Counted from the first letter of the stretch, positions 9,549 through 14,960 are shown. The stretch is DNA of 64,000 nt from Selaginella moellendorffii (GCF_000143415.4 NW_003314341.1:423165-487164); one strand, 5' to 3'. Notes: generated from the sequence alone by a model not told the origin. Numbers and translations: made by a program.

Positions 9549-10007
9549 TCAAAGTAAGCAACAAAACCCCTCATCGTTATTGACATGCTGATCTGCTTTC
9601 TCGTGCTTAGTTTGTGAGAGCAACTCATCTCTTGAGATCTCAATATCGACATACATGGAACCATCTAAAATTGTCAGCTTTGCACCCGTGAAACCTTGGC
9701 TGATGCATCTGTCCCAAAGCTCTTGAAGTGCTTCTGCAAAATCATCTACTGTAAGCCTATGTACATGGCGAATGTGAAGAAAGACTCCAAAGTTTCCATG
9801 TATACCAACATAGAGATCTGGCCTAAAATTATTCGCAATGAAACTCCTCCAGGCAGCTGCAGCTCCCGCACAATAGTCTTCCTGGTGAGTTCTCTGGTGC
9901 CTATAACCTACACATTGACGATATGACAAATTTGAATAAGCAATGGATTCAATGGCGAGATTAAAGACCAGGAGTGACAGTAACATATACATTTTGGTTG
10001 CAAACAT
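9549..10007 (-). CDS. Small putatively secreted orphan protein, CCLL-family paralog A
   Basis: Intronless 152-aa ORF with a hydrophobic N-terminus; full-length paralog of 12416-12853 and 13462-13905 (CVG.R.QRTHQEDYC, LTV.DFAE.L..LWD.CI.QGFTGAKLT, NDEG.CCLL). Confidence 0.8.
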   Translation of the reverse strand: MFATKMYMLLSLLVFNLAIESIAYSNLSYRQCVGYRHQRTHQEDYCAGAAAAWRSFIANNFRPDLYVGIHGNFGVFLHIRHVHRLTVDDFAEALQELWDRCISQGFTGAKLTILDGSMYVDIEISRDELLSQTKHEKADQHVNNDEGFCCLL

Positions 10008-10653
10008 GTGAGAAATAATCTATTTATTTGACTGTGTCCTCAATTATCAGAAGGAAAAGTCAAGGCACAATAATTTCTTTCCAAAATTCCAAAATTTAGG
10101 CAAGCATATTCGTGTGTTTTGGAACCTCCATCTTAGCTTGATTGCAACAGCAAGGAAAGCTCAGCAAAGTCGTTATATCGTAAGCTACTCATATCTTTCA
10201 CGGTTTCCTCAGTTGTCTCAAAACAATACTACACCTTAGAAGAGCGGAGAACATAAAAAAAAAAAAAAAAAATCAGTTTTGTGTGTCAGGGGGGCGAGGG
10301 AGCGCCCAGTGCTCGAGGCAGAGGAGCTTTCACGCATCACACAGCCCCCCCGTGAGCACACTGCTGCCGGAAAAAAGACTTGTCGGCATACCTGTCCGCC
10401 TCAAAGAGTGATAGAAAAGAAGAAAAACTTACACACGAAAAACCATCAAACTTGAATTTCCGTAGATCTCTTCCAGTAGGTACAAACTCTTACTGACCAT
10501 GCTTTGTTTTTGTCTCTGCTCTCTCCTCCTCAAAAGAATTGAAGACCACAGTTAGTTAATGGTATCTGGTGGATAGTACCAGTTTCATAGATAGTTGTTT
10601 GTCGCCTTAAGGATTATTGCACCCCCTTCGCTTCTGTTTTGTGTGTCCCGGCG

Positions 10654-11627
10654 TCACAGCACTGTACAGCCCCGTTGCTTCTTCTTTCGTTTCTTCTGCT
10701 TTGGAGGTTGCAACACCACCTTGATTGCCGCGTCGAACACAGCTTTCACATTCTGGGGCACCAAAACGAAGGGTGTTTTAGAAAGATGTGCCTCAAACGA
10801 GGGCCGAGCCAAACCTGCTGCGTCTTTGAGCTACACTCGATGTAGGCAGCCGCCCCGATTTGCTTCCTCAGCTCTTCGCCCTGCAGCATCACGTGGCTTA
10901 TAAATTCAGTAAAGAGTCGAGACAAGCAAAGGTGTTATGACCTGTGCAGTGGTAATAGCTGTAGCACCCGGATGATCGTTAAAGAAGTGCTTGTCATCCC
11001 TGAGATCTGAGAGCAAAACAACACTTCCGTTAGCAGCAATTACAACGGAGAAAGGATGACGTTAATCTTACCCAGCTTTGTACCCACAAGGATGACAGGC
11101 ACGGTAGAAGCATAATGTCTCAGCTCCGGAATCCACTACAAGACGAAGAAACAAATTTAGAAAATGCGAGGCGAAAAGCAAACCATTGTAACCTTCTTCG
11201 AGATGTTTTCATAGCTGGCCCTGCTGATAAGGGAAAAGGCCAAGAGGAAAACATCGGCTCCTCTATAGCTGAGGGGCCTCAAGCGGTTGTAATCTTCTTG
11301 ACCTGCGTGACGAAGCAGCCAGAGATGAGAGATTGATTCATCCTCAAATCAAACACAGATTTTTTTTTGACGAACCAGCAGTGTCCCAGAGCCCAAGGTT
11401 GACAGTGTTGCCATCGACAACCACATTGGCGCTGAAGTTATCAAAAACAGTGGGAACGTAATCCTGTTGATGAACGATCCCAGCCCAAGAGAGTTAGAGA
11501 AAAAGGAAAGAACAAAACGAAATCTCACAGTGGGGAAAGTGTTGCTCGTGTATGAAATGAGCATGCAAGTCTTGCCCACCGCACCATCTCCGACGGTAAC
11601 GCACTTGATAAATCTTGAAGTGCTCAT
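10654..11627 (-). CDS. ROP: Rho-of-plants small GTPase (type I ROP/RAC), multi-exon
   Basis: [62 protein letters not shown]; polybasic tail [15 protein letters not shown] ending in CaaL; GT-AG introns. Confidence 0.97.
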
Positions 11628-12415
11628 GATTCTCCTCTTGCCCCTTTCCTTCGAGATTTTTTTTCTTTCTTCTCCCTCGCTCTGCTAAGCAAGAACCAGC
11701 CAAGCGCCTCTTCTTTCCTCCCGCATTTATTCCCCTAGAAACCAAAACCTACCCCACTGCCGCTCCTCCTCCTCGCGGGAGCTACTGCATTGCATTGCTC
11801 CAAGAAATTCCCCAATGCCGTGACCTAGATCTGTCACTGGAGCTGGATTGCTTGCAACCGACGCCGGAGAGCAAGGAGAGAAATCTTCCAATCTTCCAAA
11901 CCAAGCGCGTGGATCTGCGCCTCGGCCGGCGCCTAGAGAGGAAGAAGGGCAAAGCGGACGAGATGGAGGACAAAAACTTAACTCTTTATGTGAGTGTGTG
12001 CGTTGTTCTTCTACTATACCTCGTCTTTGAAGCGTGGAAAGAGAGGGGAAAGAAAGTGGAAAGAAATGGGGGTTGTGATGGGTAAAAGAAAGAGCTTTGG
12101 CGTTTGTTTTTAAATGAAAGAGAAACTCTCCTCCCAAGTGGTTGCCGTTGGGCCAGTGGTGTACGGTCAGGATTGGGACGCTTTTTGTTTTTTAAAAAGG
12201 GCCCAAATTTTCTTTCATGACTTGGAAAGGTGGCGCCAATGGATTCATTTGACTGATGTTTGCAAGTCACTCCAACAACATTGGGTGGGCTCCAATTTCC
12301 AAACCATATGATAACAATTTCTCTTATTCTTAGTAACATTCTTCCTTCCCAAGGCTCTAAAAGATACATGTGTACTCTACTCAAGGTAGGAGAATATGCG
12401 GATAATGGGTGTGGC

Positions 12416-12853: not shown

Positions 12854-13461
12854 TGTCTGTTGGAAATACATGAACAAAGAAAAGTGAGTATTTATATACA
12901 GCTAAATAGGATATGCAATTATTCCTACAATAATGATTGACTAAGTTTGATAATTATTTATAAAACTTTATTTATTCATCCTATTTCTATTTATTTTTAT
13001 ATATTTATAACATTTTCAGAATAATGATTAATATTATACTAGAATTAATTAAGTACTTCTAAAAGAATGTTTGGCAGTGCAATCTATTTCCAACTCTATT
13101 TTTGGTTAAACCTATAGGTACCTAGTATATACTTGGATATTTTAGTATTAATCTCTGACCTAATGAGAATATTTTTTATAAAAATAAATATGTTTATAAT
13201 TTCTATAATTTCTTAAACAGGACTTTTCTGTTAAAAAAGAACAGCAACTTTAGTTTAAGTTATAGAAATTTATCTAAAAGAATATTTAAAATTATTTTTA
13301 GATTAAAACCTTATATATTAATAATTAATAGATATTTTAGGATAACGAATAAAACAATTGTAACAAAATAATTTCAAACTAGTCAAAATTATAGTGAAGA
13401 TAATTCTATTTGAATTGTATCTTATAAAAAGACATTTTTTTCATATATATCATAAGCGACA

Positions 13462-13905
13462 ATGAGATATTTGCTAATGTGGATTCTACTATTAAATTCT
13501 GTCATTAGATCCTTGAATTACTCAGTTGTGGCATATCATGAATGTGTGGGGCGTAGAAGTCAGAGAACCCAACAAGAAGACTATTGTGAAAGTGCTGCAG
13601 GTGCATGGAGAAATTTTATCTTAAGGAATTTTACTCCAGGGCTCTATTTTGCCATAGAGAACTCTATTGGAGTTTTTGCTCACTTCAACCGGGTGCACCA
13701 GCTTACAGTTGCTGATTTTGCAGAAGGCCTCCAAGATCTTTGGGATCAATGCATCAGCCAGGGATTCACAGGTGCTAAGCTCACCCTCTCGGACAGTTCC
13801 ATGGTTGTTGAGGTCCAAATCTTAAGAAATGAATTGTTGTCACACACTAAGCAAAAGCAAAACAAAGGAGTTGACAATGACGAGGGATATTGCTGTTTAC
13901 TCTAA
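13462..13905 (+). CDS. Small putatively secreted orphan protein, CCLL-family paralog C
   Basis: 147-aa intronless ORF, inverted duplicate of paralog B including 5' and 3' flanks; TATAAA ~40 nt upstream. Confidence 0.8.
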   Translation: MRYLLMWILLLNSVIRSLNYSVVAYHECVGRRSQRTQQEDYCESAAGAWRNFILRNFTPGLYFAIENSIGVFAHFNRVHQLTVADFAEGLQDLWDQCISQGFTGAKLTLSDSSMVVEVQILRNELLSHTKQKQNKGVDNDEGYCCLL

Positions 13906-14660
13906 AAGACATCTTATCAATATATTCTTCTACCTTGAGTGTATGGATTATTTAAGCCTCCGAAGGAAGAATGTTAATCTTATGCTTCTAGTTGTTTAAA
14001 ATATGTAATAATAATAATACTAGGAATAAGGAAAAATATAATATTAATGAGGTGCTAAAGGATTTAAAATATGTAATAATATTAATACTACAAATAAGGA
14101 ATAATTTGCTGTGTGTTTGCCAAAACACTTCGTTTGCTTAAGATAAACAGAAGGTTCCACTTTCTTCATCTTCAAAGGGAATCAAGAAAGAAACAATCTC
14201 GGGCTCAGCAGCAGCAGCATGAACGATTGAAGTTTCCCTCAGTCCATAAGTTCTTAATATACTAGCTTTCATATTAGAAAGGCTGGTTTTGGAGCTAGGT
14301 GTTATAGCTTTGGCTTGGAAATCCCAACAGCAGTGTTTGCATCAGGCAAGAACAAAACTCTCCTTCTAACAGGTTGGAGTGTAGAGAGATAAAAACAAAC
14401 AAGAACTCAAGAGCTAGCCCTCTATAAGCACTGCTTAATTCTTTTGAGCTTGTTGAAATTACTCTTGCAGGACCTGTTCCTCGCCACAAGATCGCAACAG
14501 CAGGCAAACACAGCTTCTAGCAGAAAGGACGACCTGCACTAGAATCCTGTCGTCTCTAGCCTTAAAACCAAACAATTTCAAGTCAAATCTCGTGACCAGA
14601 ACCTTGTCCATCTTTGTCTCTATCTCATTGCTCACCCCAAGGAATGGACATGCATCCACT

Positions 14661-14960
14661 TTATAGCATTGAAATGATATTAATTTGATTTACTTTTTTG
14701 TCATGGGTGTTGTCAATTAGCAGCAACACACTTCTTACACAATCAAAATCTCGACTTGCATGCACAATACCTTTGTTAATGCAATCGTCCCCGAGATCCT
14801 GAAGGGCTTCTGCAAAATCATGAACTGTAAGACTGTCCACCTGGTTTATGTGCCCAAAAAGTGCGTAGTCCTTTTGTTCAGTTAACTCTATGATACCTAT
14901 GCATTCATACACAAAGTTGACTATGAAAAATCACATGGAATAACCAAGTGAATATCTCAT
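14661..14960 (-). pseudogene. Degenerate CCLL-family paralog D
   Basis: ATGAGATAT (MRY) start followed by an early stop; retains YECIG, QKDY, FGHINQVDSLTVHDFAEALQDLGDDCINKG with internal deletions; CCLL tail lost. Confidence 0.7.

Follow-up and report, generated by a model that had tools for sequence, protein, structure and literature searches.

A stretch of 64,000 nt from the genome of the lycophyte Selaginella moellendorffii (GCF_000143415.4 NW_003314341.1:423165-487164; hereafter, the window, in which positions are counted from the first letter) harbours, between positions 9549 and 14960, three intact paralogous genes and one decayed copy, placed on both sides of a gene for a ROP/Rac-type small GTPase. 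A fourth intact member occurs at another locus of the same species. These four genes, called A, B, C and D below, are real protein-coding genes under constraint. With a probability of roughly 0.55, we take them to constitute a Selaginella-only family of secreted proteins with an alpha/beta sandwich of the KP4/DUF26 type, which would be subject to local turnover and to conditional expression.

Paralog A (minus strand, 9549–10007) is an intact, intronless open reading frame (ORF) of 152 amino acids with its stop codon at 9549–9551; it is located 276 bp past the 3′ end of the ROP gene, on the same strand. The ROP gene (minus strand, 10283–12056) consists of seven exons, according to RNA reads, and specifies a protein of 197 amino acids with the CaaL box CTVL. 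It sits between A and B, with family copies on either side. Paralog B (minus strand, 12416–12853) is likewise intact and intronless and encodes 145 amino acids, counted from the MRY ATG at 12853; the ORF spans 12416–12877, and an in-frame ATG at 12871 would add six residues. Its stop codon is upstream of ROP, some 360 bp from where the ROP transcript begins. Paralog C (plus strand, 13462–13905; 147 amino acids, intact and intronless) is oriented head-to-head with B across a spacer of 608 bp (12854–13461; about 20% GC), one instance of the AT-rich DNA flanking these genes. A, B and C all end in CCLL. The decayed copy occupies 14661–14960 on the minus strand, with a recognisable core at 14754–14873: its ATG is at 14960 and codon 10, within the signal region, is a stop codon; an internal stretch of some 28 residues is missing, another residue stands in place of the conserved Trp, and the Cys of the C-terminus have been lost.

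When the whole window was searched with each ORF by tblastn, A, B and C retrieved each other (E 1e-57 to 1e-75), and the only additional match in the 64 kb was a weak fourth copy at 14754–14873 (E about 1e-8). Identity is 78% between B and C and 58–59% between A and either of them. The initial annotation, made from the sequence alone, had described this arrangement of three intact intronless paralogs and one pseudogene in AT-rich DNA around ROP, and both the ORF listing and the tblastn search bear it out. The conserved blocks it had pointed to (QRTxQEDYC, LTVxDFAExLxxLWDxCIxQGFTGAKLT and NDEG[FY]CCLL) as well as the five Cys are all found in A–C. The GC content at third codon positions (GC3) of the family genes is 0.38–0.52 versus 0.60 for ROP.

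B and C form an inverted duplication with arms of 396 nt that are 83% identical overall and 92% identical over the last 50 nt. The similarity extends from about 150 bp before the ATG to about 80 bp beyond the stop codon, while paralog A can be aligned to B and C only in the mature coding part. Carriage by a transposon was considered and rejected: there are no terminal direct or inverted repeats around the copies, and the similarity between copies stops within about 150 bp of the ORFs. A contaminant contig was rejected too, since the family has ordinary plant genes for neighbours and the ROP transcripts come from exactly this sequence. Directly downstream of C, at 13995–14105, an AT-rich unit of 43 nt occurs twice in direct orientation; the two copies are 91% identical and their starts are 68 nt apart.

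The fourth intact gene came to light in an exhaustive search with a hidden Markov model (HMM) of 1.84 billion representative proteins, which returned three marginal matches (E 2e-4 to 7e-4). Two of these (P0002 and P0003) are repetitive low-complexity proteins and were rejected as chance matches. The sole genuine match (P0001) is SELMODRAFT_409220 (EFJ30363.1) from S. moellendorffii itself (GCA_000143415.2, scaffold GL377575.1), a chimeric, mis-fused gene model of 554 amino acids named as a protein-kinase-domain protein (L001:10001-12944). Its C-terminal part is spliced from a separate intronless ORF, paralog D (L001:12155-12583; 143 amino acids), which has a signal-like N-terminus of its own; both the start and the true C-terminus of this ORF are missed in the model. 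D is 31–34% identical to A–C (tblastn, E 1e-15 to 1e-18). It terminates in PYCRQFH, keeping only the first Cys of the tail pair, so that the -CCLL ending by which the family had first been characterised holds for A, B and C and does not extend to D. About 5 kb upstream of D, near L001:6930-7200, there is a decayed copy. After its signal-like start, MVRPFTVALLLSSFGPSLAYSEAIVEC..., comes a stop codon, and the DFAEAICDIWKDC block lies in a different frame.

The second locus is without ROP, and the location of the family beside that gene appears incidental. With intact and dead copies at both loci, the local birth and death proposed at the outset is supported. The qualification of the family as orphan stands insofar as it belongs to no known family by sequence; it falls short insofar as an intact member exists elsewhere in the same genome.

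Differences between the paralogs concentrate at third codon positions; in the pair B–C, first, second and third positions account for 22, 13 and 37 differences, respectively. The pairwise ratio of nonsynonymous to synonymous divergence (dN/dS) ranges from 0.21 to 0.41, with dS at 0.34 for B–C and about 1.0–1.4 for A versus B or C; in comparisons with D, dS is saturated. For the youngest pair, B–C, dN/dS is 0.37. We ran 2000 neutral simulations per pair, in which the number of substitutions and the share of transitions were set to those observed. For every pair, none of the 2000 runs yielded as few amino-acid differences as observed, and the reading frame was still open in only 6% of the runs for B–C, about 1% for A–B and A–C, and 0.1% for C–D. 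The ratios and the simulations are clearly non-neutral, and we therefore conclude that the genes have been maintained as coding since duplication. The dead copies illustrate what unconstrained decay looks like at these loci.

The four proteins are probably secreted by way of a cleavable signal peptide, as the initial annotation had supposed, to judge from hydropathy and cleavage contexts. A hydropathy scan identified in each member a single N-terminal hydrophobic stretch (Kyte-Doolittle 2.4–3.4 over 9 residues) and none elsewhere. It is followed by a short polar stretch and then by a conserved Tyr-Ser; in paralog A, the signal-like N-terminus reads MFATKMYMLLSLLVFNLAIESIA, followed by YS... 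The contexts in A (SIA/YS) and D (SLA/YS) are good ones for signal peptidase. The mature proteins would measure 124–129 amino acids (about 14.5 kDa) and would be acidic, with a pI of 4.8–5.9. Of the five Cys in each member, four align across the whole family (mature positions 9, 23, 78 and 125) and would suffice for two disulfides, which we predict to form.

By sequence, the genes belong to no recognisable plant family, in agreement with the initial annotation, nor to any other. Searches of Pfam with hmmscan gave no match for A, B, C or D at E up to 1, nor up to 10. A word-indexed search of 5.8 billion proteins yielded no relative, whether the query was C by itself or the alignment of all four members; a profile run against the sequences of the Protein Data Bank (PDB) gave chance matches only (E 0.79), and scans with back-translated patterns detected no relative in 185,579 bacterial and archaeal genomes, nor in JGI metagenomes. 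A collection of 15 billion proteins contains no entry identical to A, B or C, implying that no annotation has ever included them. To judge from these searches, the family is limited to Selaginella. By sequence it is a member of none of the KP4, Hce2, MU117 and DUF26 families: their HMMs do not match it, the C-X8-C-X2-C motif is missing, and it has four conserved Cys in place of six; at most, it could be a new, sequence-unrecognisable branch of the same shape class.

Evidence for that shape class comes from structure prediction. The AlphaFold2 models are weak because only four sequences were at hand: model 1, made from three sequences with the signal peptide included, has a pLDDT of 40, and model 2, of the mature part, a pLDDT of 46 and a pTM of 0.40. 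The two agree past the N-terminus on a helix, a hairpin, a second helix and a second hairpin, and model 2 adds an N-terminal strand, giving the order beta-alpha-beta-beta-alpha-beta-beta. We compared model 2 with 48,161 representative PDB chains by a structure comparison independent of Foldseek. The six best matches (scores in brackets) were, in order, the DUF26 protein PDLP8 (6GRF; 6.5), Gnk2 (4XRE; 6.0), the DUF26 protein PDLP5 (6GRE; 6.0), the Lyophyllum decastes lectin (4NDS; 5.8), Zt-KP4 (8ACX; 5.6) and lectin Y3 (5V6I; 4.7). All six belong to one fold class, with 90–97 residues aligned at 3.1–3.7 Å, after which the list drops to unrelated chains. In Foldseek, DUF26 (the top match, with a probability of 0.94) and Zt-KP4 (0.72) are among the few geometrically sensible matches to model 2, at E-values that are all at least 0.1.

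A language-model atlas points weakly to the same fold class: the neighbours of C are clusters of small secreted proteins from fungi, some of which carry Hce2, KP4 or MU117 domains (0.80–0.89), Hce2 being carried by a minority of the members of these weak neighbour clusters, and those of mature A are fungal as well (0.76–0.78); a feature search with D gave no neighbours. DUF26 superposes on the fungal lectins LDL and Y3 (PMC6368629), and plant proteins of the Gnk2 type are counted among the relatives of KP4 in a survey based on structure (PMC12382754). We put the odds of a KP4/DUF26-class fold at roughly even. The KP4/Ecp2-type fold envisaged in the initial annotation receives tentative support from one low-confidence model, of which the best structural matches are, however, with the DUF26 proteins of land plants at least as much as with fungal KP4.

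The plant DUF26 proteins (PF01657, Stress-antifung; Gnk2 of Ginkgo, the ectodomains of PDLP5 and PDLP8, and the single-domain secreted CRRSPs of Selaginella) would resemble the family in having a signal peptide and one domain of some 105–125 residues, and, going by the low-confidence model, in the packing of two helices on a five-stranded antiparallel sheet with the same order of elements. They are also encoded by land-plant genes that expand by tandem duplication, and some secreted proteins of S. moellendorffii with a single DUF26 domain come close to the family in size and layout (PMC6368629). The family differs from them in its four conserved Cys, where DUF26 has six, in the want of a PF01657 match and of the C-X8-C-X2-C motif that is the hallmark of DUF26 (PMC6368629), and in the long acidic C-terminal tail of A–C ending in CCLL. 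With the KP4/Hce2 proteins (Zt-KP4-1, 8ACX; Ustilago maydis virus KP4, 1KPT), it would share a small secreted alpha/beta sandwich of two helices and five strands and, with Zt-KP4-1, the two predicted disulfides. Members of the KP4 superfamily show little or no mutual sequence similarity (PMC12382754). Unlike KP4/Hce2, the family matches none of PF09044, PF14856 and PF15474, is acidic and has no fungal relative by sequence. The fungal lectins LDL (Lyophyllum decastes, 4NDS) and Y3 (Coprinus comatus, 5V6I), which are of the DUF26 fold class (PMC6368629), would be comparable as small, secreted, disulfide-stabilised proteins, albeit without sequence similarity. In the moss Physcomitrium patens, KP4 genes have been proposed to result from horizontal transfer (Guan et al. 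2023, as cited in PMC12382754). They may provide a parallel for a small secreted protein of this fold class in an early-diverging land plant; the moss proteins, however, match the Pfam KP4/MU117 models and have clear fungal homologues, and the Selaginella family does neither.

In the explanation that we favour, a precursor of about 145–150 amino acids would be cleaved after its signal peptide, leaving an acidic mature domain of some 14.5 kDa with two disulfides. The mature domain would adopt the two-helix, five-strand alpha+beta sandwich of the shape class that includes DUF26/Gnk2, LDL, Y3 and KP4/Hce2. The family would have grown by local duplication and shrunk by decay, with B and C as a recent inverted pair, A as an older copy, D elsewhere and one dead copy per locus. 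The proteins would most plausibly serve in extracellular binding, either lectin-like or in defence or signalling, and their expression would be confined to a stage or condition outside the public RNA data.

A number of results weigh against this explanation. In B and C, the presumed cleavage context is the less typical SLN/YS, with Asn where A and D have their -1 residue, and the acidic pI is unlike that of classical cationic antimicrobial proteins; the antimicrobial role entertained in the initial annotation is unsupported. The C-X8-C-X2-C motif is absent from the family proteins, and none of them matches KP4 (PF09044), MU117 (PF15474), DUF26 (PF01657) or Hce2/Ecp2 (PF14856, a family marked by three conserved Cys and an aromatic motif) at E up to 10. 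Confidence in model 2 is low; a wide structural search with model 1 returned generic beta-beta-alpha-beta-beta fragments and left the DUF26/KP4 class unconfirmed, and a shape search of the ESM Atlas gave incoherent results, mainly bacterial PDZ and T2SS entries.

The RNA data point the same way. We compared positions 9400–15000 with two raw-read runs and, from other studies, with the contigs of a further two, using ROP, which lies outside the family, as an internal positive control. ROP is strongly expressed (coverage about 100–200x), all six introns are spliced, and RNA contigs match its exons without any difference. On A, B, C or the dead copy, there was not a single read in the two raw-read runs, and none of the contigs of the other two runs fell on them either. 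Among 20 indexed runs (8 studies) that hold words of this sequence, 15–20% of the sampled words were present, which is the share from ROP mRNA alone; the best of the 20 contains ROP and one 125-nt fragment only. No expression was thus detected in the sampled runs, an outcome that the initial annotation had listed, together with neutral evolution, as counting against it: the family genes are silent in all sampled RNA, and their expression may still be stage-specific or induced by attack.

This silence could also mean that the genes are relics, once constrained, which have lost their function and are decaying like the adjoining dead copies. Besides the lack of expression in any sampled run, the dead copies at both loci would suit such a scenario, as would the fact that A–C were called by no annotation and D only inside a mis-fused model. 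We nevertheless consider it very improbable: four ORFs have stayed open across dS values up to saturation, the youngest pair is constrained too (dN/dS 0.37; none of 2000 neutral runs), and a copy that is truly dead looks different, with its stop codon, deletion and lost Cys. Scarcely credible is the idea that CCLL works as a CaaL prenylation box, as CTVL would in ROP, and that the proteins are lipid-anchored and face the cytosol instead of being secreted. CCLL is formally C-a-a-L and is invariant in A–C, and the last 50 nt of B and C are better conserved than the rest (92% versus 83%). However, we found no sequence relation between CCLL and the ROP tail, and prenylation is unlikely because the motif is not conserved in D, where only the first Cys of the pair is kept in PYCRQFH, and because the signal-like N-termini, if functional, would put the C-terminus in the lumen of the endoplasmic reticulum (ER), away from the cytosolic prenyltransferases, a topology deduced from the N-termini. 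It is decidedly unlikely that the fold lies outside the KP4/DUF26 class altogether, the family having some other or new lineage-specific alpha+beta fold with, e.g., a role in reproductive or developmental signalling in unsampled tissues. The assignment rests on a single model with a pLDDT of 46, the other model leads to unrelated generic matches and the atlas shape search is incoherent, while the silence in vegetative RNA would suit a stage-specific role. Nonetheless, six coherent top matches covering 90–97 of about 105 core residues, followed by a gap, are unexpected for a random poor model, and the order of secondary structure elements is that of DUF26/Gnk2.

The family may be a very divergent, vertical offshoot of DUF26, derived from the single-domain secreted CRRSPs by loss of the motif and re-patterning of the disulfides. 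DUF26 is the top Foldseek match (0.94), single-DUF26 secreted proteins of S. moellendorffii are similar in size and layout (PMC6368629), and the genomic setting is plant-like. We still hold this to be unlikely, as there is no PF01657 match even at E up to 10, the Cys motif is absent, the Cys at 9, 23, 78 and 125 allow for two disulfides and not three, and the match stems from a low-confidence model and was not reproduced with the other. The initial annotation had considered horizontal acquisition. Transfer of a fungal KP4/Hce2 (Ecp2)-type gene, with subsequent diversification in Selaginella, could account for the intronless state and for a GC3 below that of ROP (0.38–0.52 versus 0.60), the language-model neighbours of C and mature A are all fungal, and the moss KP4 genes, as cited in PMC12382754, would set a precedent. 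On the other hand, no fungal or other non-Selaginella protein surfaced in the 1.84-billion-protein HMM search, the word-indexed search or the metagenome scans; the atlas scores are under the reliability line of the tool, with a low recognition score and nothing for D, and being intronless and AT-rich would suit a young or rarely expressed plant gene too. Intronlessness and lower GC3 are compatible with such plant genes, horizontal transfer is supported by nothing found in the sequence searches, be it fungal, bacterial or metagenomic, and we judge it improbable. A bolder version of the explanation that we favour, which strikes us as quite unlikely, sees in the family a hitherto unseen, lycophyte-restricted branch of the KP4/DUF26/fungal-lectin sandwich with disulfides of its own, either intermediate between DUF26 and KP4/Hce2 or issued from a second, independent transfer from fungus to plant, which would be under selection and expressed only in an unsampled stage or on attack.

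A well-studied reference plant genome still holds constrained coding genes that annotation, protein databases and transcriptomes have missed. Should the fold prove true, there would be a branch of the KP4/DUF26/lectin sandwich in an early vascular plant that is unrecognisable by sequence, which would bear on the origin of the plant DUF26 receptor and PDLP families and on the frequency of fungal-type secreted proteins in plants. The practical gain is modest: four defined genes for work on secretion, sugar binding, antimicrobial activity and stage-specific expression.

Some additional observations concern the neighbourhood. The ROP transcripts are of two alleles, each accounting for about 35–65% of the reads, which differ by four substitutions (at 10669, 11217, 11802 and 11962) and by two indels, with 2 nt deleted at 10640 and 1 nt inserted after 11656; given these proportions, both haplotypes of the plant appear to be expressed. 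Between A and the 3′ end of ROP, at 10116–10241, run X1 has a contig of 171 nt (depth 5) in the orientation opposite to that of the ROP contig, which may represent read-through or a minor transcript. Elsewhere in the window, the large ORFs belong to ordinary plant genes (PPR, LRR, ribosomal S3Ae and PHD). At 39951–42927, two long ORFs on the minus strand (430 and 602 amino acids), unmatched in Pfam at E up to 0.001, adjoin a PHD-finger-like ORF (43611–44657) and a PPR gene (44860–46749).

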